Source: Schizochytrium sp. TIO01 (taxonomy: Eukaryota; Protista; Bigyra: Labyrinthulomycetes). Taken from it: a stretch of 34,409 nt of DNA. Below, piece after piece: positions 13,124 to 31,473 of the stretch. The stretch covers positions 1-34,409 of the forward strand of contig SMSO01000020.1 in NCBI GenBank assembly GCA_004764695.1, in the 5' to 3' direction. Below the pieces are notes generated by a model. It worked only from the letters and a program-made list of their open reading frames with translations. It was not told the DNA's origin and did no database searches. Made by a program: the position numbers and the translations under genes. Position 1 is the first letter of the stretch; each line of letters begins with the position of its first letter.

Positions 13124-16100
13124 ATGATGACTCCTGGAGGCAGCAAGAAGAGCAATAAGCTCAAGAAGAAACAAGAAGCTGCGGACCAAGCGGCGAACAT
13201 CAAGAAACAGAGTCCCGACTCTGATGAAGACATACGTGAAGAACTACGAAAGCTTAAAGAAAAGCTAGCAGTAGATTGAAGCTTGCACTGACCCTAAGAG
13301 ACAACGTCTACTAGACAGTGCACTTTTCACCTTACTCAGCAATCAAGCTGGTCCAAATTTTCAAAAACAACTACTACATTATGGTAAATCACACCATGGA
13401 CATGAAGGACGCGCTGCCTGGGCACAGCTTCAAATTGCATTTAAAAAACAGCCTGGTGAGACCAATCTTGACAAGGTCACAGCACTCTTACAATGTCTTC
13501 GGAAATACCTTGACAATTCCCTTGAGAGTATGTCAGAAAACGAAATCATGGTATGGTTTATGGAACTATACAACACTCAGTGTGAATTGTTAGCTACTGG
13601 CATGACGTTACATGATTACATGTTTATCCTTAACCTTTTACCACGTATTCGTTACATGGGTCCACAAACAACTGCGATCTATGGCAAAGCAATTAAACTC
13701 AAAGAGTATAGTAAAGAATTGTTTCAAGAGTTACGAAACACGGAACGGGAAGTTGCACAACAATACACACTAAAAGGCAAAAGTGGCTATTCTGCTGGGA
13801 ACCCTGAACCCACACATCTACAAGCAAACTCCTTTCACCCTTCCCGGAACAAGTTCAAGCGTCAAAAACGACCTACATCTCAAAACAACAATTCCGGGGG
13901 AGCACAACAACCCTTTCCTCAAAGGAATAAATGCTCACACTGTGGTTATTCAAATCATGCTGAGGCAAACTGCAAATTCTTGACAGCAATTTGTCCTATC
14001 TGTAACCAAGTTGGACACAGACCCTCTGTTTGTCCACGTAGATCATCGCGACAACAAAAGTCGAACAACAAGCGTCAGCGTCATAATTCAACACCACCGT
14101 ACAAAGGTCTCGCGTTACACAACGCTCCTTTTGATCAAGGACCTTTTCATGCCAATTTCAGTGTCAACCTTCTGACAATCAATCATCTAAAATCAGAACC
14201 GAAGTCAGCAGAGACAACCTCAGAAGGATTCCTACTAGATTCTGGATGCAATTTGCATGTCACACCAAATCTTGCATTACTTTCAAACTATGAGAACATT
14301 AATCCACTATCAATGGATGCAGCTCAAGGATCCTCAGTTCCGATTTTAGGAAAAGGTACCCTGGAGGCACGAGTAAGATCAACGTCGGGTAGAATTGTTC
14401 CTTTAACACTTACAGTCTACTACGCACCTTCCCTTGCTCACACATTACTGTCGACGTCTATTATGACTCAGCAAGGATTCTCATTTTTCTTCTCACAAGA
14501 TAGCGATCGTATGACCACTCCACATGGAGAAGTTATTACACTCGGTCAGCAATCTGACATCCCAATGCTTATCCCTGTAAAAGCACCCAAAGTTAACGCT
14601 CTGCAACTACGGAAAGCACAAAAACTCAGTTATAAAGGAATAGATTGGCTAGAAGCTCATCTTAAATTAGGTCACGCTTCAATTCCACGCATAGCATCCT
14701 CCATAGGAGTTTCTGCATCACAAATCGACTTCTTATGCATGGATTGTAAAGTTGCCAACTTTGAACGTATTCCAGTGACAAAAGGACCTCACACACCATA
14801 TGCTAAGTCTCCTCGACAAGCTGTTACAGCTGATGTGATGGGACCATTCCACGTTCTAGGCATTCCCAACAAGTTCAAATATGCCATAGTCTACAGAGAT
14901 CTTTACTCAGACTTTACATATGTTTATCCTATACAATCCACTGATCAAGTGTCCACGACCCTTCGTACTTTTGCTCAAGCATGGCTCCAAGGTAAAAACA
15001 CCTCGCGCATCATAATTCGCACAGACGGAGCTAAATATTTTACAGGCGGAGAATTTGCAAGATCACTTCACACCATGCGGTGGGAACATAAACTATCTGC
15101 ACCACACTCTCATGCTACAAATCCTGCTGAAGGCATCAATCGAGTACTAATGAATGGTCTTCGCTCCAATTTAAAAACTGCATTACTCGGAGCCAAATAT
15201 TGGCCCTATGCTTTATCTCATGCTGTACATGTCAAGAATCGCACAGCCTCCAGTCGCAATCGGAAATCTCCGTACGAACGACATTTTGGCAAAGCACCAG
15301 ACTACAGCTACTTCCACATTTTTGGAGCACCATGTGTGTTCAAGAAGTTTCCCATTCCGCAAAAGTTGGGAGATAGGGGTGAACTAGGCATTTTCCTTGG
15401 ATATGCTGATAGTTACACTCATGGAACTGTACATGTCTTACCTAAAGACAAGTCCAACATTCTTCAAACGCGTGAAGTCAAGATTTTCGATCAAGCATTG
15501 ACTGAACAAACTCGTCAGCGTGCAATGTCGATAGAAACCGCTCTGACACCTGATCTAATTACTCATTGGACACGTGAAGAATCAAATAAACTAATTGCTG
15601 GAGAAATGTATCAGGATCTACCTGCTTTATCCTCCGCAGCTAATAATACTAAATCTTTCCTCACTCCTAATACCCCAGAATATAATGATGACCGTGAATC
15701 CAATAGTGAACACACTAGTCGTCCGGAGGTAAACAATGATGACCGTGAATCCAATAGTGAACACGCTAGTCGTCTGGAGGGAAATCATAATGACCGTGAA
15801 TCCAGTAGTGAACACGCTAGTCATCCGGAACCCAATCATAATGACCGTGAATCCAGTAGTGAACACGCTAGTCATCCGGAACCCAATCATAATGACCGTG
15901 AATCCAGTAGTGAACACGCTAGTCATCCGGAACCAAATCATAATGACCGTGAATCCAGTAGTGAACACGCTAGTCATCCGGAACCAAATCACAATGACCG
16001 TGAATCCAGTAGTGAACACGCTAGTCATCCGGAACTAAATCACAATGACCGTGAATCCAATAGTGAACACGTTAGTCATTCTGAGGTAAATAATGATGAC

Positions 16101-18019
16101 CGTGAATCCAAAAGTGAACATGCTCGTGAAGACATGGAACTAGAACATAGTTCAGTCCATGCACACGATAGTCATCGGAGATCCAAAAGGACTCCCAAAC
16201 CTCATGTACCACTAAATGTTGGTCCCAGTGCCAAAGGCGCTGCAAATAAATACCGATACTATACCAATCGTCTGAAACGAAAACGTAATATGACGAATAC
16301 AGAGTTAGATTTCTCGGATATTAATTCTCTATCAAAAGAAGAGAACTTACATGAACTAATCATTCCCACGATATATCCGAGGGAACAGGAATATTTTGCT
16401 TTTCTTATTAAAACCAACACAGATAATAAACAATTACCTAAACCGGTCCCAAAACCATGTCCATATGACGACATTGTAGTTCCAAACACTTATAAAGAAA
16501 TGCGGAAACTGCCTCAGGCATATCAGCAACTATGGATCGCTGCGATGAATACTGAACATCACAATCTGCAGTCCGCTGGTGTTCTGGAAACTGTACCCTT
16601 ACACACTTTACCACAGGGACAGACTGTAATGGGAACTAGATGGGTCTTTACAAAGAAGGCACCACCGGTCAATCTGTTAAAAGCACGGGTTGTAGTACAA
16701 GGCTACAATGAGGCCATTGAACATGTTTATGATATATACTCACCAACAGTTAATGTTGAAAGCATTCGTGTTGCAACAATTATTGCTTTAACGAGAGGCT
16801 ATGATGCTATCACCGTTGACGTAACAGCCGCATTTCTAGAAGCACAAATTCCAGATGACGAATTCCTCTACATCAAAGGCATTGAAGGTCTTGACTTAGC
16901 AGAAGGTTATTGTTATCGTCTGCGTAAAAGTCTATATGGACTCAAAAGTGCCCCCCGTAGGTGGATGGATCATTTGACGGCTATATTAGAAAATTATGGC
17001 TTAACACGATCTATAACGGACGCATCACTCTTTATTGGCAAAGATCTTCTAATGACTATCCATGTTGATGACATGAGAATTTTTGGCACGCCCCAAGCAC
17101 TCAAAGCGATTGTCAAAGAACTCGAACAAATGTCGGCGTCAAAGTTAATCGTGAAAAACAATGCCATTATCTTAGTGATACACATGTCTATGACAAGTCA
17201 CGAAAGATCTGTACCATCAGCCAACGCGAGTATTGTGAAAAAGCCCTTAGGCGATGTAATATGGAAAACTGCAATGGAGCTAAGACTCCATCCATCCTTA
17301 AAGAGTTAAGTGATCATCCTGACGACTCTGTGAATGAACACTATCGTCCACTTGTCGGCACTCTAATGTATTTACTAAAAACTCGACCGGATATGGCATA
17401 CACTTTACACCAACTTGCATGTCATGGTCAAAAGAATGGAGCGGAACATATGCAAGCTCTTAAACATGCATTCCGTTATGTCAAGGCCACAAAGGACAAA
17501 GTTCTAACACTCAAAGGCGTGGATTCAGAGGCACAACTTGTTTTGAACGTCTATACAGATGCTTCTTTCAGCAAGGCACATGACAAACTTCGTCGTAGTG
17601 TTACAGGATATGTTGTTATGATAAATGATAGTGCTGTTGTATGGAAAACAACCAAACAGTCTACAGTTGCAAGAAATACTCACGAAGCTGAACTAATTGC
17701 TGCAGTTGCAGGAGTTCTCAGAGCAGAATCCATTCGACAACTTTTAGCAGACATGAACATTTACATCAATGAAATACAGGTATATATAGATTGTCAAGCA
17801 TTAGTAAACACAATCAAAAAGGAAGAAGTTAATGGTACAAATGGTTATCTCGCAGTACAACTAGCAGTACTGATTCATCGAAGACAAAACCAATTACTCA
17901 AGGTACATCATGTTAAAGGCACAGAAAATATAGCTGATTTACTTACCAAACCACTTGCAGCACCATCTCATTGGAAACACGCTAGTCGCTTACTTGATGC
18001 TTCAGGTGCTGACGCGTGA
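13124..18019 (+). pseudogene. Copia gag-pol polyprotein with frameshifts near 13274 and 17128 (main ORFs 13530-17309 and 17261-18019)
   Basis: Two CCHC knuckles (CSHCGYSNHAEANC, CPICNQVGHRPSVC); protease FLLDSG; HHCC motif HLKLGH...CMDC; integrase ADVMGPF / IRTDG / AEGINR; RT KSLYGLK and HVDDM; RNase H YTDASF, EAE, ENIADLLTK. The RT reading continues in the second frame from ~17129 (NVGVK...ISQREYCEKALRRCNMENC). True start uncertain. Confidence 0.9.
15684..16130 (+). repeat. Nine in-frame 51-bp (17-aa) tandem repeats in the integrase-RT linker
   Basis: GACCGTGAATCC at 15690, 15741, 15792 ... 16098; peptide HNDRESSSEHASHPEPN. Confidence 0.95.
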
Positions 18020-19048: not shown

Positions 19049-22000
19049 CTATTTAGAACTATTTTTATTCAAAATATAAGGGCCTAGACATCCCAATGCT
19101 CCACGAAAGGCAACGTTTGCAGCTTCCAGCCCATCAAGCTCTACTTTCTGCGCAGAAAGATAATCCTCTTTCGAACTCAGCTCATTCGAGCTGTTAACAG
19201 GCCAGGTTTGTGTAAGAAGACTACGCTTCACTGAAAACGGCGGAGAAAGTGCATCGTTCACAACATGTATACAACGAAGCTCACGAGATATCTGTTCAAG
19301 CATTTTCCTTCTTGCCTTTGCAGAATAAATTTCTTTATTAAACTGGCGCTCCTTGTACATTTCATCCGTCAACCCATCGGACATTCTAAGGATCAGTAAA
19401 AACCAAATGACATCAACTCCGTTCGTCAGTTAACAATTTCACGTCATCAAAAGGCACCCACAGTATTGCCAGTACAGTTTCATTTATTCTCTGATATTAT
19501 CATGTTGTTTGTTACATCCACAATCAACCAAACAAAACAATTCCGCAATAAACTTGCAATGACGCGAAGAAAAACATCGGCAAAACAACACAGGAGACAA
19601 CACAGGAGACAACCCATGACGCAACCAACCAACCAAGTCTCATGCACAAACCAGTACACGAGCTATCGCTTAAACAACTTACTCAAGTAATGTCAGCGAC
19701 CAGTTCACTTTTAGCGCCGCACCCACTGCCTTGGCGCCCTCTGAGCCGATACTGTTGTATCCAAGACTGTTGATTTGATTGAATGATGAAAAGCAATACA
19801 TTACACGTTACATATTACAATAAATGCACGCATACATGCATGGACGTGAGTGATCTAGGTTGGCTTTCACCATTTATCTTTGTTGTGTTGTCATTTTGCT
19901 CTTTCTTCGATGGATGTATACTCACCCAAACAGACAACCCATCCATCCATCAAACAAACAAGAGATTGCATAAACTTGCAAAACAACACCGACCCACCCA
20001 CCAAACAACAAACCAAGCTTCATGTACAAACAAGTCCACGAGCTGCGGTGTTGCGTAGACAACTTACTTGAGTGATGTCAGCGACCAGTTCTCTTTCAGC
20101 GCCGCAGCCACTGCCTTGGCGCCCTCTGAGCCGATATAGTTGCTTTGAAGACTGTCGATTTGATTGAATGATGGCAAGCAATACATTACAAGTTACATAT
20201 TACAATAGATGCACGCATGCATGCATGGACGTGAGTGATCTCGGTTGGCTCTCAGCATTTATCTTTGTTGTGTTGTCTTGTCATTTTGCTCTTTGTTCGA
20301 TGGATGTATACTCACCCAAACAGACAACCCATCCATCCATCAAACAAACAAGCGATTGCATAAACTTGCAAAACAACACCGACCCACCCACCAAACAACA
20401 AACCAAGCATCATGTACAAACAAGTCCACGAGCCGCGGTGTTGCATAGACAACTTACTTGAGTGATGTCAGCGACCGGTTCTCTTTCAGCGCCGCACCCA
20501 CTGCCTTGGCGCCCTCTGAGCCGATATAGTTGCTTTGAAGACTGTCGATTTGATTGAATGATGGCAAGCAATACATTACAAGTTACATATTACAATAGAT
20601 GCACGCATGCATGCATGGACGTGAGTGATCTAGGTTGGCTTTCAGCATTTATCTTTGTTATGTTGTCATTTTGCTCTTTGTTCGATGGATGTATACTCAC
20701 TCAAACAGACAACCCATCCATCCATCAAACAAACAAGCGATTGCATAAACTTGCAAAACAACACCGACCCACCCACCAAACAACAAACCAAGCATCATGT
20801 ACAAACAAGTCCACGAGCCGCGGTGTTGCGTAGACAACTTACTAAAGTGATGTCAGCGACCGGTTCTCTTTCAGCGCTGCACCCACTGCCTTGGCGCCCT
20901 CGGCACCGATATCGTTGCTTCTAAGACTGTCGATTTGATTGAATGATGGAAAGCAATACATTACATTGCAATGCATTACATTGGATACATGCATGGACGT
21001 GAGTGATCTAGGTTGGCTCTCAGCATTTATCTTCGCTGTGTTGTCATTTTGCTCTTTCTTCGATGGATGTATACTCACTCAAACAGACAACCCATCCATC
21101 CATCAAGCAAACAAGAGATTGCATAAACTTGCAAAACAACACCGACCCACCCACCAAACAACAAACCAAGCATCATGTACAAACAAGTCCACGAGCTGCG
21201 GTGTTGCGTAGACAACTTACTTGAGTGATGTCAGCGACCGGTTCTCTTTCAGCGCCGCAGCCACTGCCTTGGCGCCCTCGTCGCCGATATTGTTGCCCGA
21301 AAGACTGTCGATTTGATTGAATGATGGCAAGCAGTACATTACACGTTACATATTACAATAGATGCACGCATGCATGCATGGACGTGAGTGATCTAGGTTG
21401 GCTTTCAGCATTTATCTTTGTTATGTTGTCATTTTGCTCTTTGTTCGATGGATGTATACTCACTCAAACAGACAACTCATCCATCCATCAAACAAACAAG
21501 CGATTGCATAAACTTGCAAAACAACACCGACCCACCCACCAACCAACTAACCAAGCCTCGTGTACAAACGAGTCCATACACTACGGTGTTCCTAAGTTAA
21601 CTTACTTGAGTGATGTCAGCGACCGGTTCTCTTTCAGCGCCGCAGCCACTGCCTTGGCGCCCTCGTCGCCGATCTCGTTGTCCGAAAGACTGTCGATTTG
21701 ATTGAATGATGGCAAGCAATACATTACACGTTACATATTACAATAGATGCACGCATGCATGCATGGACGTGAGTGATCTAGGTTGGCTTTCACCATTTAT
21801 CTTTGTTGTGTTGTCATTTTGCTCTTTGTTCGATGAATGTATACTCACCCAAACAGACAACTCATCCATCCATCAAACAAACAAGCGATTGCATAAACTT
21901 GCAAAACAACACCGACCCATTCACCAAACAACAAACCAAGCATAATGTACAAACAAGTCCACCAGCTGCGGTGTTGCGTAGACAACTTACTCAAGTGATG

Positions 22001-24253
22001 TCAGCGACCGGTTCTCTTTCAGCGACGCAGCCACTGCCTTGGCGCCCTCTGAGCCGATATTGTTGCTTTGAAGACTGTCGATTTGATTGAATGATGGCAA
22101 GCAATACATTACATTGCAATGCATTACATTGGATACATGCATGGACGTGAGTGATCTAGGTTGGCTCTCAGCATTTATCTTCGCTGTGTTGTCATTTTGC
22201 TCTTTCTTCGATGGATGTATACTCACTCAAACAGACAACCCATCCATCCATCAAGCAAACAAGAGATTGCATAAACTTGCAAAACAACACCGACCCACCC
22301 ACCAAACAACAAACCAAACATCATGTACAAACAGGTCCACGAGCTGCGGTGTTGCGTAGACAACTTACTATAGTGATGTCAGCGACCGGTTCTCTTTCAG
22401 CGCCGCACCCACTGCCTTGGCGCCCTCTGAGCCGATATCGTTGCGCTGAAGACTGTCGATTTGATTGAATGATGGCAAGCAATACATTACATTGCAATGC
22501 ATTACATTGGATACATGCATGGACGTGAGTGATCTAGGTTGGCTCTCAGCATTTATCTTCGCTGTGTTGTCATTTTGCTCTTTCTTCGATGGATGTATAC
22601 TCACTCAAACAGACAACCCATCCATCCATCAAACAAACAAGCGATTGCATAAACTTGCAAAACAACACCGACCCACCCACCAAACAACAAACCAAGCATC
22701 ATGTACAAACAAGTCCACGAGCTGCGGTGTTGCGTAGACAACTTACTTGAGTGATGTCAGCGACCGGTTCTCTTTCAGCGCCGCACCCACTGCCTTGGCG
22801 CCCTCTGAGCCGATATAGTTGCTTTGAAGACTGTCGATTTGATTGAATGATGGCAAGCAATACATTACACGTTACATATTACAATAGATGCACGCATGCA
22901 TGCATGGACGTGAGTGATCTAGGTTGGCTCTCAGCATTTATCTTTGTTGTGTTGTCATTTTGCTCTTTGTTCGATGGATGTATACTCACTCAAACAGACA
23001 ACCCATCCATCCATCAAACAAACAAGCGATTGCATAAACTTGCAAAACAACACCGACCCACCCACCAAACAACAAACCAAGAATCATGTACAAACAAGTC
23101 CACCAGCTGCGGTGTTGCGTAGACAACTTACTCAAGTGATGTCAGCGACCGGTTCTCTTTCAGCGCCGCACCCACTGCCTTGGCGCCCTCTGAGCCGATA
23201 CTGTTGTATCCAAGACTGTCGATTTGATTGAATGATGGCAAGCAATACATTACACGTTACATATTACAATAGATGCACGCATGCATGCATGGACATGAGT
23301 GATCTAGGTTGGCTCTCAGCATTTATCTTCGCTGTGTTGTCATTTTGCTCTTTGTTCGATGGATGTATACTCACTCAAACAGACAACTCATCCATCCATC
23401 AAACAAACAAGCGATTGCATAAACTTGCAAAACAACACCGACCCACCCACCAAACAACAAACCAAGCATCATGTACAAACAGGTCCACGAGCTGCGGTGT
23501 TGCGTAGACAACTTACTTGAGTGATGTCAGCGACCGGTTCTCTTTCAGCGCCGCACCCACTGCCTTGGCGCCCTCTGAGCCGATATCGTTGCTTCTAAGA
23601 CTGTCGATTTGATTGAATGATGGCAAGCAATACATTACAAGTTACATATTACAATAGATGCACGCATTCATGTATGGACGTGAGTGATCTAGGTTGGCTT
23701 TCAGCATTTATCTTTGTTGTCTTGTCATTTTGCTCTTTGTTCGATGGATGCATACTCACTCAAACAGACAACTCATCCATCCATCAAACAAACAAGCGAT
23801 TGCATAAACTTGCAAAACAACACCGACCCACCCACCAAACAACAAACCAAGCATCATGTACAAACAGGTCCACGAGCTGCGGTGTTGCGTAGACAACTTA
23901 CTTGAGTGATGTCAGCGACCGGTTCTCTTTCAGCGCCGCAGCCACTGCCTTGGCGCCCTCGTCGCCGATATCGTTGCCATAAAGACTGTCGATTTGATTG
24001 AATGATGGCAAGCAATACATTACACGTTACATATTACAATAGATGCACGCATGCATGCATGGACGTGAGTGATCTAGGTTGGCTCTCAGCATTTATCTTT
24101 GTTGTGTTGTCATTTTGCTCTTTGTTCGATGGATGTATACTCACTCAAACAGACAACTTATCCATTCATCCATCCATATATCCATCAAACAAACAAACAA
24201 ACCAGCCATTGCACAAACTTGCAAAACAATAACAACAAAAGCAACACCGTGCA

Positions 24254-24329
<76 letters not shown>

Positions 24330-24406
24330 GTGTTAACTTACTCTAAAATTGTAGCACCATTCTGAAGCTGTTCAAGGGCAGCGACAAGACTTGGGTTGTC
24401 CGACAT
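19049..24406 (-). CDS. 14-exon gene for a 469-aa protein with 12 RI-like/NLR-type 28-aa leucine-rich repeats (one LRR per exon) and a ~111-aa C-terminal region of unknown function
   Basis: Exon 1 is 24406-24342 (MSDNPSLVAALEQLQNGATIL). The 84-nt exons are 23985-23902, 23600-23517, 23215-23132, 22830-22747, 22452-22369, 22074-21991, 21689-21606, 21304-21221, 20926-20843, 20541-20458, 20151-20068 and 19766-19683. The last exon is 19385-19049. All 13 introns start GTAAGT, end in CAG or TAG and are phase 2. The spliced CDS is 1410 nt with no internal stop. Repeat consensus xLxxNxIGxEGAKAVxAALKENRSLTSL. Confidence 0.92.
19620..24230. repeat. Tandem array of 12 exon+intron units (378-390 bp, mode 385)
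   Basis: Exon-to-exon spacings are 385, 390, 385, 378, 385, 385, 378, 378, 385, 385, 385; introns are nearly identical to one another. Confidence 0.97.
24255..24328. repeat. (GCAA)n microsatellite inside intron 1 of the LRR gene
   Basis: About 18 perfect copies, ending just inside the intron 1 donor region. Confidence 0.95.
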
Positions 24407-25959
24407 CGCAGCAAGTAAAGATCTATACCTGAACCAGCGTACGCGTGCTTATATCCCTTCAGCTAAGCTCGTGGCGCAGCCCCAGTCGTTGCAGAAGGTT
24501 TCGAACCTGCTGGACGTAAAGCTGCAAGTCGATGACAGAGGTGCGCCCATGGTCTGACTTACTGAGTTACTATGGTTCTCCTTAAGAAGGAGATACTCTT
24601 TAGTGCTCTCGAAGTGAAAGGATATTTTACTATTACGAACCTAACCTTGCCTACTCAGCCTCGGGTTCTGCATGTGCTGACCCCTTTCTTTCTCGCTCTT
24701 TCAAGACTATTCCTATTTCCTAAAGCCTACTCCTAGAATATCTTCTGCAGGGATGCTTGCTGCAGAGGTTCCACTACCACTCTCTCCTAATACTATCTAT
24801 CTTGCACCTAAGTCGTCAAAAAAGTAAGTAAGTGACTATAAATTCATCATGCACCCTCTCTTCAACACATTCGATCATACCACGCGGGTAACACCTCATC
24901 TCATTCGCACTGAGAAGTAAAGTCGCGTAGGGCCGGGTCAGTAGTATGATAGGGGACTGCATGCGAAGCCCCGGTGTTGAATGTTTTTTTCCTCCTTTTT
25001 TTTTTTCTCTTTATTTTTTTCCCCTTTCGAACAACTAAAAAACAGGCAACATCATTGTGCAGAGTCTAAACCTCCTTGAACGCATGCTAATGATATACGT
25101 CATTGAGCTTGTTCACTCGTGGAAGCTGCAGTACTTATTTTCATCGACGAAATCACTTGTACGCAGGGCAAAGTTTGCATTCCGATCACCATTTTGTATG
25201 GAGATCGACTAGAGTGACAATGAGGTGGCCGCAGACGCTTCTTTAAGATGCAAAGAACTTTCTTTGCATTCTGCAATTTTATGGCAAATTAGGGTGAGGC
25301 GTTCACCAAGAGATAGCGTAGATAGAGGAATGAAGGAAAAGAATGGTTAGCATTAACATTCAGGAACTGCTGACAAGGTCCATCTTGTCCAGGTCTAGGG
25401 AGTGGGATTGTGACCATTCTACTTATAGATACACCTATGCGCGCGCTAGTTATGCACAAGCATAACCTTTCTCGTTCAAGTTCATCAAATACTTTCAGGA
25501 GAAATTGGTGTTTACACAATATATTTTTTGGTTGTTGCTGTGTTCTCATGGCAGAAAGAAATACAACCAAAGAAGGCAAATAAAGCTGTAATATGGAGGA
25601 TGGAGCAGACATACCTATGTACATACTTAGCTGTTATACTTCAATTAATTGTCAAGACAACACTGCACTTGCTTCCCTGCTCCTGAGCTTTGAGAGGTAT
25701 AGAAAGCTAGCGATTTAAGGGTTCTACCTGCCCAAGACAAATGAAGAAAGTTTGATCATTTCCGAATTTCGTTCCTCCTTTGTTTGTTCTCAGGAAAGGA
25801 ATAGGATTATTCCTCCACACTTTCCATTTAGAGACGTAGTAGTACTTCTCCAAAGTACTACTGCATATTTACTACTATGATAGTACCTACTTAATATATC
25901 CTAGTACTTGTCAGATTTTTATAAAAATTAAAAGAGTTTTCAAAAACTCTGAAAAAGAA

Positions 25960-26030
25960 AGCGTCAGCCGGGAATCGAACCCGGGGCAGCCGCATGGCAA
26001 ACAGCTATTTTACCACTAAACCACTGACGC
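25960..26030 (-). tRNA. tRNA-Gly (GCC)
   Basis: Minus strand GCGTCAGTGGTTTAGTGGTAAAATAGCTGTTTGCCATGCGGCTGCCCCGGGTTCGATTCCCGGCTGACGC: acceptor stem GCGTCAG/CTGACGC, anticodon loop TTGCCAT, T-loop TTCGATT, and a downstream T-run terminator. Confidence 0.95.
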
Positions 26031-26345: not shown

Positions 26346-29300
26346 TTAGGATGAAGAGTCAATGTCACACACGTCAGAGATGATTTCATCAGAAATTGAC
26401 ATCAGACCATCTGCATCTGCTTGAACTTGGAGGTCCTCGACCGATCCAAATGCTGCGGCCTTGACTCCGTTTCCTATGCGCACAAAAACCAGATATACGT
26501 CATCATCGGTTCCAAGAATCCCGTCAGCACCCTTACGTAAATCTGCAGCTGCCTTCTTGGCACACGTTTTGGGGTTCTTCGGGTATCCGTTAGCCTTGCA
26601 ATCGGTATTTTTGGTGGGATTTCCATCTGTAAGAATAATTGCGACCCTTCGATCAAGCCCAGAACGAATTTCAGTGTTCGCAAAGATTTTCTGTGCCCTG
26701 ATTAGCGCACCGCCAGTACCAGTGCCAGAGCTCACTCTGGGTACTGTATCCATGGTAGTTTGAAACAGACTTTGTGAAGTAGCAATCGTCGAATCAAAAT
26801 CCCACAAAGTAGTCACACTACTGGCAAAACGAACAGCTGCCAGGCGAGAGTCCGAGCTAGTAGAACCGACCTGAAACGCGCTTCCGAGAGCCTGGATAAA
26901 CTCCGTTAACTGGGCCCATTCTGTACTGCTCACGGAACCAGAAGAGTCTAAAATGAACAATACATCATTGACCTTTGGGCCACACGGGATGACAGAAAAC
27001 CCATATGAATTGAGTGTTGGTGCCGCAGTGGGTGCTATGGTGCCGTCATCAGAAGTTGAAGAAGAGTCTTCAGTGGGAGAGGAGGTAGGAGATGCGGTTG
27101 GAGTACACCCTGCCGTAAGACCAGTGATGAAATCAGCAGTTGTAGATTTTTTCTTGCCAGCGCTCTTACGAAGAGAACAAATTTCTTTACTTGCTTGATA
27201 TACCCAAGCTACACAACTAGAAGTACTGTAACAAATCTCTGCGCACTCTTCTACGGAGGCGATGTTACCTGTCTTAAGGAGAGACGCTCCGTTGTACATG
27301 TAGAATTGTGAGTAGCAAGAACTTGGCGAAGGGCAAACAAAAGTGCCTGCGATTGATTTCTTGTTTTTCTTCAGCTTAAAAGTTCCAGATTTGAGCAAGC
27401 ATACCTTGCTCTTTGAGTTCCACGAATAGCCCGTACATTGATCTACGCCGATACAAAGCTCACGGCAAGCATCAATACTCTCGACCGCTTTTTCAGTGGA
27501 CAGTGTTTCACCACCGGACAGTTGAGCTTGGGTGATATCACATCTTGCAAGCGTTGGAGCTGAAGTTGGAGAATTCGTGTCAGTCTCCGATACTCGCACT
27601 TCTGTAGGTGCATCAGTGGGCGAAGGAGTTGTTGGAGCATTTGTAGGTGCATCAGTGGGCGAAGGAGTTGTTGGAGCATTCGTAGGTGCGTCAGTGGGTG
27701 AAGGTGTTGTTGGAGCATTTGTAGGTGCATCAGTGGGCGAAGGAGTTGTTGGAGCATTCGTAGGTGCATCAGTGGGCGAAGGAGTTGTTGGAGCATTCGT
27801 AGGTGCATCAGTGGGCGAAGGAGTTGTTGGAGCATTCGTAGGTGCATCAGTGGGCGAAGGAGTTGTGGGAGCATTCGTAGGTGCGTCGGTGGGTGAAGGA
27901 GTTGTTGGAGCATTTGTAGGTGCATCAGTAGGCGAAGGAGTTGTTGGAGCATTCGTAGGTGCATCAGTGGGCGAAGGAGTTGTTGGGGCATTTGTAGGTG
28001 CATTCGTAGGCGAAGGAGTTGTTGGTGCATTCGTAGGTGCATCAGTGGGCGAAGGAGTTGTGGGAGCATTCGTAGGTGCGTCAGTGGGTGAAGGAGTTGT
28101 TGGAGCATTTGTAGGTGCATCAGTAGGCGAAGGAGTTGTTGGAGCATTTGTAGGTGCATTCGTAGGCGAAGGAGTTGTTGGTGCATTCGTAAAATAGCGA
28201 GCCCGTCCGAAGTTAAAGGCAAATGTCATCGTGTTATAAGTCTCCCCGTTCCACACCCAGTATACATCTGTATCAGTCAGACCCTCAGCTGGTAGACCCC
28301 AGACACCGTTGCCATTTTGAGTATAGACTAAATCTTTTGAAGATGCATCTGTGAGGGTTGGTTCGATGTACCACTCTAAAGAATCAGGGTCCGCATTCAT
28401 TACTGTGGACCCGTTCGTTACATATCGTGTTCCACATGCATCAATCACAGCTTGAAAACCTCCAACAGAACCCACATCTTTACATTCGAATTCAAGATGT
28501 GTGTTGTCAGTCAAATTGATAGTCTTCGTGAATGTGTTTTCCCATTCTGTGATGTCCCATTCTCCTGTACGATCGCTCGCCAATTCTACAAATAAACTGT
28601 CGTCAGACAATTCGTATTGTCGAAATTGCAGATAATTGTCACACCGAGCCTCAATTGTTGCAGAGGTGCACTCCTCGCTAGGACATTCCAAATTGAACCC
28701 AAATGTCATGGTATTGAGGTTATTGTCATTCCAAACCCAAAATGTATCTTCATCTTTGAGTCCGCTGCCAGTACTTCCCCACTTACCAGCGCCCATAGCC
28801 GTATAGACAAGGGTTGAAGATGAGGAGTCAGACTTGTCAGGGTTGATGAACCATTCGTATGGGCTTGGGTCACTTTCAAGAGTAACACTTTCATCCGTGA
28901 TAAACCTGTATCCGCAAGCTTCAATTTCCGCCACAAAGCCTCCGACATCGGAAATATCTTTGCATTCGAATTCTAAATGGGTCTTACCAGAAAGATCGAC
29001 AACTGTAGTGAACGTCTCTTGCCAGTTCTCCAAATCCCAATCACCAGTGCGATCGCTAGGCTCTTCGACATAAGCGTCATCCGTCAATTCGTATTGGCGG
29101 AACTGAAGCTTATTGTCACATCTAACTCTGATTGTAGCATTATTGCAGTTGCAGAGATCAGCATTGTATGAACCACTTGTAAAAAGCTTGGTTGGGCTTT
29201 GGGTCGGGGATGCGGTAGGTTCTGGCGTGGGTTTTGCTGTCGGTTTTGATGTGGGACTGTGCTTTTGCCCCCAATAAAGTACCCTTCGATCTCCCACTGC

Positions 29301-29489
29301 ATCATCGCTTTCTACGGGAATATTCGCAGCCAAAGTAAAGAGTTTGCGGCTATCTGTTGTAGCTTCGATCTCAGACTCCGCTGCCAAGTCATGAACAACG
29401 CTTCCAGCAGGTTTTGCAGCTTTTGCCATGTAAATTATGGCTACGAGGGCTACAAGAGCAGGGGCAAACCATCTGTGAGGGTTCCGCAT
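26346..29489 (-). CDS. Secreted/surface adhesin-like protein: signal peptide, two ~155-aa duplicated domains, Thr/Pro mucin stalk, two PAN/Apple-like domains, C-terminal vWA domain
   Basis: Uninterrupted ORF (track gives 26346-29588 from a TTG; likely ATG at 29489, MRNPHRWFAPALVALVAIIYMAKA). PAN-like CRELCIGVDQCTGYSW..CLLK and CAEICYSTSSCVAWVY..CSLR. vWA DVLFILDSSGSV (DxSxS MIDAS) and IILTDG. Confidence 0.88.
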   Translation of the reverse strand: MRNPHRWFAPALVALVAIIYMAKAAKPAGSVVHDLAAESEIEATTDSRKLFTLAANIPVESDDAVGDRRVLYWGQKHSPTSKPTAKPTPEPTASPTQSPTKLFTSGSYNADLCNCNNATIRVRCDNKLQFRQYELTDDAYVEEPSDRTGDWDLENWQETFTTVVDLSGKTHLEFECKDISDVGGFVAEIEACGYRFITDESVTLESDPSPYEWFINPDKSDSSSSTLVYTAMGAGKWGSTGSGLKDEDTFWVWNDNNLNTMTFGFNLECPSEECTSATIEARCDNYLQFRQYELSDDSLFVELASDRTGEWDITEWENTFTKTINLTDNTHLEFECKDVGSVGGFQAVIDACGTRYVTNGSTVMNADPDSLEWYIEPTLTDASSKDLVYTQNGNGVWGLPAEGLTDTDVYWVWNGETYNTMTFAFNFGRARYFTNAPTTPSPTNAPTNAPTTPSPTDAPTNAPTTPSPTDAPTNAPTTPSPTDAPTNAPTTPSPTNAPTNAPTTPSPTDAPTNAPTTPSPTDAPTNAPTTPSPTDAPTNAPTTPSPTDAPTNAPTTPSPTDAPTNAPTTPSPTDAPTNAPTTPSPTDAPTNAPTTPSPTDAPTNAPTTPSPTDAPTNAPTTPSPTDAPTEVRVSETDTNSPTSAPTLARCDITQAQLSGGETLSTEKAVESIDACRELCIGVDQCTGYSWNSKSKVCLLKSGTFKLKKNKKSIAGTFVCPSPSSCYSQFYMYNGASLLKTGNIASVEECAEICYSTSSCVAWVYQASKEICSLRKSAGKKKSTTADFITGLTAGCTPTASPTSSPTEDSSSTSDDGTIAPTAAPTLNSYGFSVIPCGPKVNDVLFILDSSGSVSSTEWAQLTEFIQALGSAFQVGSTSSDSRLAAVRFASSVTTLWDFDSTIATSQSLFQTTMDTVPRVSSGTGTGGALIRAQKIFANTEIRSGLDRRVAIILTDGNPTKNTDCKANGYPKNPKTCAKKAAADLRKGADGILGTDDDVYLVFVRIGNGVKAAAFGSVEDLQVQADADGLMSISDEIISDVCDIDSSS
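27603..28191 (-). repeat. About 15 in-frame 39-bp repeats (TNAPTTPSPTDAP), mucin-like stalk
   Basis: Seen directly in DNA and translation. Confidence 0.95.
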
Positions 29490-31246
29490 GATTCGTAACT
29501 CTCGATGGAATGATCTCCTTTTCAGATTTGCTTGATGGATCGATCTCCTTTTCGGATTTGCTGGCACAATCTGGGCGCCGTATTTCAAGCACGTAAGGTG
29601 GAACTAATCTCAAAGATGAAAGTAACTAATTTATGAAAGGCTTAGAATGGGACACCAACACAAAATGTGAGAATCAACTTGTCCAGCTTCTTGATGAACC
29701 GCAGTGCAGGCTCCGCGCTCATGGATATTTCGGAATTTTTTTTTTAAAAAATCACTATTTTTAAAAAGTAGAAAGAGGTTTTTTAATTTAAAAGGGAAAC
29801 ATATGACTGGGTGATATTCGCTCTGATATTTCTGACTAAGGCGACGGAGCAACAATTAACAACGCAACTGAAAGAGGAGATGCGTGTCCATGAGCTTGTT
29901 TTGGAAGGACATTCCGCGCAAGAAACAGAAAAGGCGGCGATTGATAGACTCAGACTGTTTGTTAACAGTATAGACCAGATTTAATGACTTTTTTGAGGAG
30001 TTTTCAAAGTGTTGCATGACCCATCTAATCCTGTTACCTCTTCTCAAATGGAGTAATTTTTATTTCAATAACGGATTTTTTACATTTAATTTAATTTTTT
30101 TTAAGGAAGATAATAAGAACAGTGATAGAAAAACATGTAGAAATCACCATACAGCAGGAAAGTGGATCCTTGTGAGACAATTGTGAGAATAGGGCAAGCT
30201 GAGGTTTTTTGGCGCGAGGAAAAAAAGTGACTAACTTCACCCAAAATATCTTCTTTGTGACATGTGACAAGTTCAAGTTGTATGAATCCTGAAGTTGAGG
30301 GTTCCTAGTCAAGGAATTAGGAACCTCCAAACAGGATACCATTGAACCAGCATGCACCCACGACTTGAGTGTATAATCACCACTCATTGAGTATACTATG
30401 AGAGGCGTTATTGAACATTTTTGCTTACTTTTGAAAACCTTCTAAAAGTATACTATCGCTTTCATTGCCAGTCTACCCAAAATCTATTTTTCTGTACCTG
30501 CTATGCAGCAAGAAGGCTCACATACCTCACAAAACCATCTCGTTTTTTTAAGAATCTCTTGGGCAAATAACATCGCTTTTAACTATGTTTTTGATGCAAC
30601 TATTCGCACACAAAGTCAAATCGTTTTAAAAGTCGCAAATCATTTCAAAAAATAAGCAATAACACTTTTGTTGCTTAAGAAACTATGAAATGTGCTTGGA
30701 GAATCTGTCCTAGTGGTTTTAGAATTGTGCAAAACACAGTATAATGATTTGTTCCAGCCGTAAGACACTGTTCAAGTCCTTTAATACGATTTCAACGTCT
30801 CTCTCTTGCAACCTATCAAAATTGAGTTTTTTGTTATGGATCTGCTCAAATATCAACATGAAATGTCACACCTCTCCATTCTTTTAGATATACCGACTTG
30901 ATGTAGCTTGCGCACATAGACCAAAGTAAAGGAAAGCTGAGCACTTTGCACTTCACAGCGCTGGTTTATGCAACTTCGGTATTTAAATTGAACGCTTTCA
31001 GTTATACAAGGTTTGGTCAAGCGTTCAGTCTTAGGGGAGAAAGGGGAGAACCCTCCTTTAAAAAGGGGCTCTCAGAAAATAGCGATGGTTGCTCTTGGCT
31101 ATCATTTAGAGCCTACTACATAACATCAGGATAGGCACTTTGGTTTGTTCACCAGCAATTAGTTCGAGGTTTTAGATTGCCGAAAGTTACTTTACTTTTC
31201 AATATGATCCAAACGATTCAATACCAGCAATATTCTTCTAACTTAT

Positions 31247-31473
31247 TATTGAAGTAATATACAGCTACTGTCTAACCTAACCTAACCTAACCTAACCAAG
31301 CCCTCATGTCCGACACATCCTGTGTACCGGACTGACATCATACATTCATTCCTGCCTGTATCCAGACCTGAAACCCCAATAACTCATATATCATCCTCTT
31401 TCTCTTTTTCCTGAGTTCGTCATCCTTGTCAGACTACCTCTCCACGCTTCACAGCTCAGGCTACTCTGCAATA
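31247..31473 (+). mobile_element. Solo LTR of the same copia family (227 bp)
   Basis: TATTGAAGTAATATACAGC...CTACTCTGCAATA flanked by the 5-bp TSD CTTAT (31242-31246 and 31474-31478); 30 nt longer than the LTRs of the full element. Confidence 0.96.

Follow-up and report, generated by a model that had tools for sequence, protein, structure and literature searches.

The 385-bp tandem repeat in a 34,409-nt stretch of contig SMSO01000020.1 of Schizochytrium sp. TIO01 (the whole stretch is referred to as the window) looks like a satellite, but it very probably represents the exon-intron unit of an intact gene for a leucine-rich repeat (LRR) protein, which belongs to a diversifying family. This assignment is well supported at the DNA level and partly at the RNA level. 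The gene lies on the minus strand of positions 19049-24406, and it is not a lone curiosity: it is one of about 100 paralogues located beside 5S rRNA genes at chromosome ends. The family is most likely a germline-encoded repertoire of variable binding proteins, which probably have a role in recognition or defence.

A hidden minus-strand LRR gene had been proposed from the nucleotide sequence of the window, and this proposal (the sequence-only reading) agreed with the analysis of the locus. A minus-strand pattern scan for acceptor, 84 nt and donor returned exactly 12 units of the form CAG-84 nt-GTAAGT, with the acceptor CAAATCGACAG and, in the last unit, the variant CAAATCAACAG. Of the 14 exons, the one with the ATG has 65 nt, twelve have 84 nt each and the terminal one has 337 nt; joined by a local script, they remain in frame and give 1,410 nt, which is 469 codons and a single terminal stop. 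This joined 469-aa model was used as a check of frame and length only, and all homology searches were run exon by exon. The period of the 12 units is 378-390 nt, and Tandem Repeats Finder reported the array at 19674-24170 with a period of 385, 11.7 copies and 93% matches. All 12 of the 84-nt exons are open and in phase 2 (27 codons, preceded by 1 nt and followed by 2 nt), as expected of the symmetric modules that had been proposed, and each encodes a peptide with the consensus L-x-x-N-x-I-G-x-E-G-A-K-A-V-x-A-A-L-K-E-N-R-S-L-T-S-L. Exon 1 and the terminal exon share this phase; exon 1 ends with GA/GTAAGT, the acceptor of the terminal exon is CCTTAG/A, and the stop codon is TAG. The shared phase had been recognized in the sequence-only reading, which also called both exons unique. 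That description applies within the window only, since at least 102 sequences of the genome match the terminal exon and a homologue of the ATG exon was present at 20/20 other loci. In order, the 13 introns measure 356, 301, 301, 301, 294, 294, 301, 301, 294, 301, 306, 301 and 297 nt. The parts of the gene, all on the minus strand except the array, for which no strand is assigned, are as follows.

24342-24406: exon 1, ATG, 21 aa and 2 nt, phase 2, donor GTAAGT; encodes MSDNPSLVAALEQLQNGATIL
23986-24341: intron 1, 356 nt, with a (GCTT)19 microsatellite at 24254-24329
23902-23985: LRR exon 2, 84 nt, LYGNDIGDEG...
23517-23600: LRR exon 3, 84 nt, LRSNDIGSEG...
23132-23215: LRR exon 4, 84 nt, LGYNSIGSEG...
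22747-22830: LRR exon 5, 84 nt, LQSNYIGSEG...
22369-22452: LRR exon 6, 84 nt, LQRNDIGSEG...
21991-22074: LRR exon 7, 84 nt, LQSNNIGSEG...
21606-21689: LRR exon 8, 84 nt, LSDNEIGDEG...
21221-21304: LRR exon 9, 84 nt, LSGNNIGDEG...
20843-20926: LRR exon 10, 84 nt, LRSNDIGAEG...
20458-20541: LRR exon 11, 84 nt, LQSNYIGSEG...
20068-20151: LRR exon 12, 84 nt, LQSNYIGSEG...ENWSLTSL
19683-19766: LRR exon 13, 84 nt, acceptor variant CAAATCAACAG, last-unit type ...KVNWSLTLL
19386-19682: last intron, 297 nt, outside the 385-bp repeat family
19049-19385: terminal exon, 337 nt, with 1 nt, 111 codons and TAG; C-terminal domain
19674-24170: 385-bp tandem array, 11.7 copies, each unit being one 84-nt exon and an intron of about 301 nt

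The peptide of exon 1 ends within the β-strand of the first LRR. If any array intron is retained, the GTAAGT donor in phase 2 places a TAA right behind the split codon (xxG TAA); only a spliced transcript can therefore have the long frame. The final 36 nt of every array intron also contain an ATG in frame with the next exon (ATGTATTGCTTGCCATCATTCAATCAAATCGACAG, giving MYCLPSFNQIDS), for example at 23986-24021. The start of the intron after exon 8 (21538-21605) is locally divergent (GTAAGTTAACTTAGGAACACCGTAGTG...), unlike the other eleven. On the coding strand, each array intron within 19683-24341 carries a G-rich run (GGTGGGTGGGTCGG), and a loose G-quadruplex pattern gave 10 matches in the gene.

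The sequence-only reading had proposed a search of the genome for paralogous arrays, and such arrays were found. About 18 contigs of the same genome carry, between them, at least 397 matches to the 385-bp unit; a 16-nt motif of the exon framework matched 1,008 times, whereas the reversed control had 0 matches. The matches to the 111-aa product of the terminal exon range from 100% down to 36% identity, and the majority of these matches have an open frame of 114-126 codons. The family size is estimated at about 100 paralogues with at least 1,000 LRR exons. That the terminal-exon frames are kept open down to 36% identity argues for purifying selection on the protein.

The window gene was compared with 20 paralogous loci, which gave 21 loci and 265 exon-like units. 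The exon is 84 nt long with an open frame in 265/265 units, and the 48 different unit lengths come from the introns only. The pattern of AG, 84 nt and GT with an open frame was found in 264/265 units, the remaining unit having a GC donor. The first exon base is T in 264/265 units, the donor is GTAAGT in 260/265, and the same 11-nt acceptor context occurs in 206/265. There were 103 distinct indel events in the introns versus 0 in the exons (P about 1e-11 under uniform indel placement). A homologous ATG exon 1 (56-65 nt, phase 2) and an in-phase terminal exon are present at 21/21 loci, the number of LRR exons per locus is 4-20, and the joined frames were intact (245-693 aa) at the 16 loci checked. 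In the LRR framework, the non-synonymous difference (pN, 0.053) is lower than the synonymous difference (pS, 0.07-0.10). No inactivated or antisense LRR exons were seen across the 21 loci.

These data bear on a quite different explanation, in which the array is a non-coding repeat of the ribosomal DNA (rDNA) spacer that serves chromosome-end maintenance, as published for the LORE-TEAR repeats, and its reading frame is incidental or a dead relic, the function being at the level of the DNA. The G-rich motif in each intron and the regular placement between the 5S and 18S genes are in its favour; G-quadruplexes in some LORE-TEARs were also reported in a preprint (bioRxiv 10.1101/2023.06.15.545109). 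Nevertheless, a spacer of this kind should not keep every unit intact, confine all indels to the introns, repeat the full gene architecture at every locus compared, or hold the C-terminal frame open among distant copies, and spliced transcripts exist for close paralogues. It is thus very improbable as a complete explanation, although a DNA-level role may exist alongside the coding one.

Several other loci were observed around this family. A sister subfamily of about 18 loci, including L013 (C31:5,690,076-5,693,414), L014 and L015, has the same architecture of 84-nt phase-2 LRR exons, here followed by GTGAGT donors, and an equivalent terminal exon for the C-terminal domain; the LRRs of this subfamily diverge more strongly, and they are separated by short, non-clonal introns (about 65-230 nt). 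An array of about 15 units at C35:2,637,091-2,642,916 has no terminal-exon match listed within several kb downstream, and it may be orphan or interrupted. The paralogue L029 (C24:4,060,410-4,070,310) has just 5 LRR exons, one of which ends atypically with ...DENRVLQVI, and a 4.7-kb gap within its array is possibly a transposon insertion.

Transcript open reading frames (ORFs) were taken from the MMETSP members of the clusters that phmmer returned with the C-terminal domain, and they match paralogues at about 80-100% per exon. The ORF P0005 consists of an intron tail (MYCLPSFNQIDS), one LRR exon, and then ...SLTLL-E-MSDGLTDE. This join is exactly the predicted junction between the last LRR exon and the terminal exon, the genomic parts of which are about 280 nt apart; P0005 is at most about 90% identical to any locus of this genome, and the equivalent last intron has been removed in it. 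The ORF P0002 (250 aa) is a member of the sister subfamily, with LRR exons followed by the same C-terminal domain. On locus L013 it corresponds to consecutive phase-2 exons of the form AG-84 nt-GTGAGT, with exact joins and the expected split codons. The exact genomic source of the MMETSP transcripts was not found in this genome, where the best terminal-exon identity was 90-91%; either they belong to a different strain or species, or the assembly lacks the copies that gave rise to them. The window copy itself is presumably expressed and fully spliced.

The predicted product has 469 aa, with about 13 LRRs in front of a helical C-terminal domain that accounts for about 110 aa. Its repeats were assigned to the ribonuclease-inhibitor (RI) and NLR class, as had been proposed. 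The repeat length is 28 aa in 12/12 units of the window and in 265/265 units of the 21 loci, within the 28-29 aa of the RI type. Single exons scored 22.0 and 19.4 bits against Pfam LRR_6 (PF13516), with E-values of 1e-4 and 1e-3, which is below the gathering cut-off of 23.4 bits; the family member P0009 scored 81.8 bits. A profile of the 12 exon peptides matched the PDB chains of RSP15, DRC5, MOP84A, GALA proteins, a ribonuclease inhibitor-like protein and NOD2 (5irm/5irl). Exon 1 encodes 21 aa and the C-terminal 111 aa have no Pfam match, with no extra exon needed, which does not correspond to a NACHT or NB-ARC protein. Judged by eye, the N-terminus is not signal-peptide-like.

The C-terminal domain is lineage-restricted and common to the family members. 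It has family-specific conserved motifs (ELRCIH and LEAAN...LGxLGxY), and an AlphaFold2 model consists of two long helices (pLDDT 73, pTM 0.32). A phmmer search against 1.84 billion representatives gave just 4 matches, three from MMETSP/JGI and one weak match from a fish, which is probably spurious.

The pattern of variation was analyzed over 244 exons, with two duplicate loci left out. The nucleotide diversity (π) is 0.56 at codons 2, 3, 5 and 8, at the split codon and at the third base of Leu27 beside it, versus 0.053 in the rest of the exon (the framework) and 0.078 in the introns. The 244 exons encode 218 distinct peptides. Along the motif L-x-x-L-x-L-x-x-N-x-I-G, variation falls on x5, x7, x8 and x10, together with one loop residue. 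The equivalent positions of RI-type LRRs lie on the face formed by the β-strand and the β-α loop, which suggests that the variable codons map to the predicted binding face. Eight amino acids (N, S, D, G, Y, E, R and K) make up 82% of the variable residues, which are polar and aromatic, with aliphatic ones almost absent, and this bias argues for selection on a soluble binding surface.

The introns also provide evidence of exchange between genes. They show little structure by gene, the p-distance being 0.058 for adjacent units, 0.066 for units of one gene and 0.079 for units of different genes, and the nearest intron relative lies in another gene for 138/213 units. Unit pairs with an intron difference of <1% still differ at 49% of the hypervariable sites. 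The loci L017 (18 exons) and L018 (15 exons) have common exon blocks, which are broken by unit insertions and deletions. The differing number and order of exons, together with near-identical introns across genes, indicate that units have been gained, lost and exchanged over evolutionary time. Two claims of the sequence-only reading, namely that exons could be added, lost or swapped in frame and that near-identical introns are present as handles for recombination, are therefore in good agreement with the range of exon numbers among the paralogues, the block differences between L017 and L018, and the introns common to different genes. A 99.3%-identical copy of the window gene at C31:3.16 Mb has the same 12 exons and about 37 substitutions. 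Two of its differences are swaps of whole 3-nt blocks: the last 3 nt of exon 7 (22074-21991) are TGA versus ATC, and codon 8 of exon 12 (20151-20068) is TCA versus GAC. Both are changes between common variant types at hypervariable sites.

Some of the observations weigh against an expressed recognition family under selection for binding. Over the terminal exon, the transcript ORFs are at most about 91% identical to any locus here, and thus they represent relatives and not the window gene. The start of P0005 lies upstream of the last LRR exon, at the ATG in the tail of a retained intron, and P0001, P0010 and P0011 begin inside the terminal exon; efficient splicing of the array introns in the window subfamily is thus presumed. 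Signalling domains (NACHT, NB-ARC, ROC-COR and kinase) are absent from the gene, and the C-terminal domain has no Pfam family, no Foldseek PDB match below E 6 and no usable ESM Atlas match. Moreover, the hypervariable codons have similar pS and pN values (0.50 and 0.57), and the third base of Leu27, a synonymous site, varies as much as the sites next to it. This base is tightly linked to the split-codon type (C-AA 79, T-GA 66, A-TC 39 and T-GT 20). The synonymous variability at Leu27 and the similar pS and pN mean that selection on amino acids alone does not explain the pattern.

It might be supposed from the latter points that diversification is directed, i.e., that templated patch conversion or local hypermutation produces the hypervariable patches beyond what selection would do. 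The linked synonymous site beside the split codon, the similar pS and pN, the whole-block swaps between nearly identical copies, and the uncoupling of hypervariable sites from their flanking introns are all consistent with such a process. However, ordinary gene conversion from other units would account for the block swaps equally well, and its tract ends would be invisible because the flanks are identical in all donors. The strongly non-random residue composition also requires selection, and no candidate enzyme was found, although no search for one was made. Directed diversification is accordingly held to be improbable.

The other question is whether the diversity arises somatically. All internal exons have 84 nt, phase 2-2 and near-identical splice sites, so any subset of them would be in frame, and human NLRP3 uses the modularity of its RI-type LRR exons for alternative splicing (PMC6642158). 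A combinatorial generator, in which isoforms arise by skipping or choosing symmetric LRR exons (2^12 combinations had been suggested), would be compatible with the repertoire described above. In several of the examined paralogues, the LRR exon closest to the terminal exon is likewise of the last-unit type ...KVNWSLTLL. Because about 100 germline genes are already diverse and the last-unit type recurs, a splicing generator is unnecessary for the data, and it is regarded as rather unlikely.

A further alternative is that the proteins are expressed but have no recognition role, being structural, nucleolar or axonemal, or members of a selfishly expanding subtelomeric family. The axonemal proteins RSP15, DRC5 and MOP84A among the top profile matches, the position of the genes inside rDNA units and the lack of a signalling domain might be taken in this sense. 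For structural LRR proteins, on the other hand, about 100 paralogues with near-saturated variation confined to 4-5 surface codons of each repeat and a near-invariant framework would not be expected, and this alternative is given little probability. The concentration of variation in the predicted binding-face codons fits the part of the sequence-only reading that proposed a generator of recognition proteins. The gene has no NACHT/NB-ARC or ROCO signalling domain, and the "receptor" of that reading is therefore putative. A binding function and a ligand of the family proteins are presumed.

For the germline repertoire, the following mechanism is proposed. Transcription would start in the spacer of about 460 bp that the gene shares with the divergent 5S gene, and 13 GT-AG introns would be removed. 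Each 84-nt exon would add one 28-aa RI-type LRR; the exon border falls inside the predicted β-strand (LTSL/x/L) in phase 2, which would make each unit a structural module that is complete in itself and neutral to the frame. In the simplest scenario, the arrays of chromosome ends would frequently undergo ectopic conversion and unequal crossing-over, which would homogenize the introns and the framework and alter the number of exons (4-20). Selection, perhaps aided by a mismatch barrier of the divergent patches, would keep old variant patches apart and reshuffle them. Four codons per repeat and the split junction codon stay about 10 times more diverse than the introns.

The closest known system is that of the ciliate Tetrahymena, which has thousands of LRR genes with tandem arrays of exactly 90-bp exons and >96% phase-2 introns (PMC6564038). 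Its youngest LRR genes are concentrated in subtelomeric and pericentromeric regions, the arrays were explained by unequal crossing-over as a form of exon shuffling, and the authors knew no other organism with such arrays (PMC6564038). The two systems share fixed-length one-LRR exons, a phase-2 bias, a split junction codon, near-clonal units and an exon number that varies between paralogues. A constant exon length (265/265) and introns all in phase 2 with a split codon place the present family among arrays of this kind. Nevertheless, the exons here have 84 nt (28-aa RI-type repeats) instead of 90 nt, and the host is a stramenopile instead of a ciliate. The genes are located in the 5S-18S spacer of subtelomeric rDNA, the introns of about 300 nt are almost identical genome-wide, and the proteins have a common C-terminal helical domain. 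The repeat lengths of 28 versus 30 aa suggest an independent origin.

The precedent cited in the sequence-only reading was instead the brown alga Ectocarpus; its LRR exon arrays are indeed comparable, whereas the closer Tetrahymena arrays had been missed. In the Ectocarpus ROCO genes, each 24-aa LRR is encoded by one 72-nt exon, with exon shuffling and positive selection (PMC3341825; also PMC11378527). The positively selected sites were placed on the modelled LRR domain, and the proteins were proposed as candidate immune receptors (PMC3341825). Both are stramenopile systems in which each LRR lies in a single short exon and the repeat number is changed by exon shuffling. The 72-nt exons of Ectocarpus, however, encode plant-type LRRs joined to a ROC-COR GTPase, while the 84-nt, 28-aa exons described here have no ROC/COR, ROCO or NB-ARC partner and do not belong to the ROCO-LRR group. 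The Ectocarpus introns also hold inactivated and antisense LRR exons, unlike those of the 21 loci.

In the RI-type LRRs of the vertebrate NLRs, the exon border is at a constant position of the β-strand and is strictly frame-preserving (Hoss et al. 2019, PMC6642158). The present gene resembles them in the RI-type class of 28-29 aa, in the border within the β-strand, and in that exon loss would keep the fold. It differs in having one LRR per exon, no NACHT domain and about 100 paralogues; the NLRP3 exons have 171 bp (two LRRs) and are accompanied by NACHT, and NLR introns are not tandem clones. Another comparison is with the 'Group 0' LORE-TEARs of Aurantiochytrium limacinum, which are spacer repeats between the 5S and 18S rDNA at subtelomeres (bioRxiv 10.1101/2023.06.15.545109). 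They were published as repeats without GenBank similarity, with a possible role in chromosome-end maintenance (same preprint). The 385-bp array of the window (11.7 copies), lying between 5S (24867-24985) and 18S (7993-9781), corresponds to the definition of this group; what distinguishes it from the published description is that its units are the exons and introns of LRR genes. The preprint, which is the version of the genome paper used for this comparison, does not mention leucine-rich repeats, and among the papers searched LORE-TEARs were found only there, with no link between Aurantiochytrium and LRR genes.

The variable lymphocyte receptors of lampreys also have interchangeable single-LRR cassettes with variation on the concave face, and they are assembled somatically from incomplete germline genes. 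The germline gene is complete at 21/21 loci here, unlike the lamprey genes. Overall, five features distinguish the present family: the RI-type 84-nt exons, the lack of an NTPase domain, the lineage-restricted C-terminal domain, the near-identical introns and the location in the 5S-18S spacer.

The chromosomal setting of the gene was also examined, with rRNA and tRNA features identified by Rfam. The other features of the window are as follows.

4255-7610, minus strand: 28S rRNA (Rfam)
7756-7906, minus strand: 5.8S rRNA (Rfam)
7993-9781, minus strand: 18S rRNA (Rfam)
4255-9781, minus strand: the 18S-5.8S-28S rDNA cluster, downstream of the LRR gene and in the same orientation
13530-18019, plus strand: Ty1/copia-type polyprotein with RVT_2, rve, Pol_BBD and SH3_retrovirus domains
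24867-24985, plus strand: 5S rRNA (Rfam)
25960-26030, minus strand: tRNA (Rfam)
26349-29588, minus strand: single-exon VWA/PAN ORF, 1,080 aa, with a 39-bp repeat (x 15) at 27604-28191

The LRR gene lies between the 5S and 18S genes, and the 5S gene is head-to-head with it, 460 nt upstream of the LRR ATG. A divergent 5S gene about 450-580 nt upstream was found at 10/15 further loci scanned (L017, L018, L020, L022, L024-L028 and L030), or 11/16 including the window. The spacer between the two genes (24407-24866 in the window) would thus serve a polymerase III gene and a presumed polymerase II gene. Family loci are mostly near contig ends or at apparent joined chromosome ends, typically between the 5S and 18S rDNA. 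Internal copies occur as convergent pairs 30-45 kb apart on contigs of 2.6-9.8 Mb, as listed below, and the other family matches are 4-60 kb from contig ends.

C30: 5,483,514 (plus) and 5,516,579 (minus), convergent pair
C13: 5,674,190 (plus) and 5,713,013 (minus), convergent pair
C6: 1,157,011 (plus) and 1,196,563 (minus), convergent pair
C31: 3,168,310 (plus) and 3,210,343 (minus), convergent pair

Such pairs would be expected if this assembly had fused two chromosome ends head-to-head. Within the window, a (CTAAC)x5.2 tract occurs internally at 31272-31297, about 31 kb from the contig start; its complement is of the TTAGG type that has been reported from A. limacinum telomeres. The Ty1/copia-type polyprotein is an insertion that separates the 18S gene from the 3' end of the LRR gene; its sequence is split over two overlapping ORFs (13530-17309 and 17261-18019) and contains an in-frame 51-bp repeat (x 8.6) at 15688-16124. 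Just inside the rDNA unit, the VWA/PAN ORF looks like an adhesin-like surface protein. A 415-bp tandem repeat at 763-3260 (x 6.0, 82% matches, GC content about 34%) follows directly downstream of the 28S gene and agrees with the 'Group 1' LORE-TEAR as published. When a hidden gene was sought in this repeat, stops were found in all six frames, with a longest open stretch of 92 codons.

The most far-reaching interpretation, which is doubtful at present, is that the approximately 100 LRR genes at chromosome ends, with their interchangeable one-LRR cassettes (at least 1,000), form a protist recognition system based on cassette exchange. If so, ectopic recombination driven by the rDNA and subtelomeres would homogenize the arrays, while directed or barrier-limited patch exchange would reshuffle the 4-5 binding codons of each repeat. 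Each chromosome end, and possibly each lineage or cell, would then encode a different intracellular binder. Such binders would perhaps be directed against the persistent mirusviruses of the host, and their expression control could resemble that of var or VSG genes.

For the genome as such, the finding means that a published feature should be reread: at least the Group 0 LORE-TEARs, which were thought to be non-coding, would be protein-coding exon-intron arrays. Their integration into rDNA units is an unusual place for polymerase II genes. After the ciliates and the brown algae, this would be the third, independent lineage with an expansion of one-LRR-per-exon arrays to a large family of variable genes. 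The near-identical introns and framework, set against near-saturated surface codons, provide a clean case of concerted evolution coexisting with diversification. Moreover, the host is culturable, transformable and persistently infected with mirusvirus, and a defence role of the family would therefore be directly testable.

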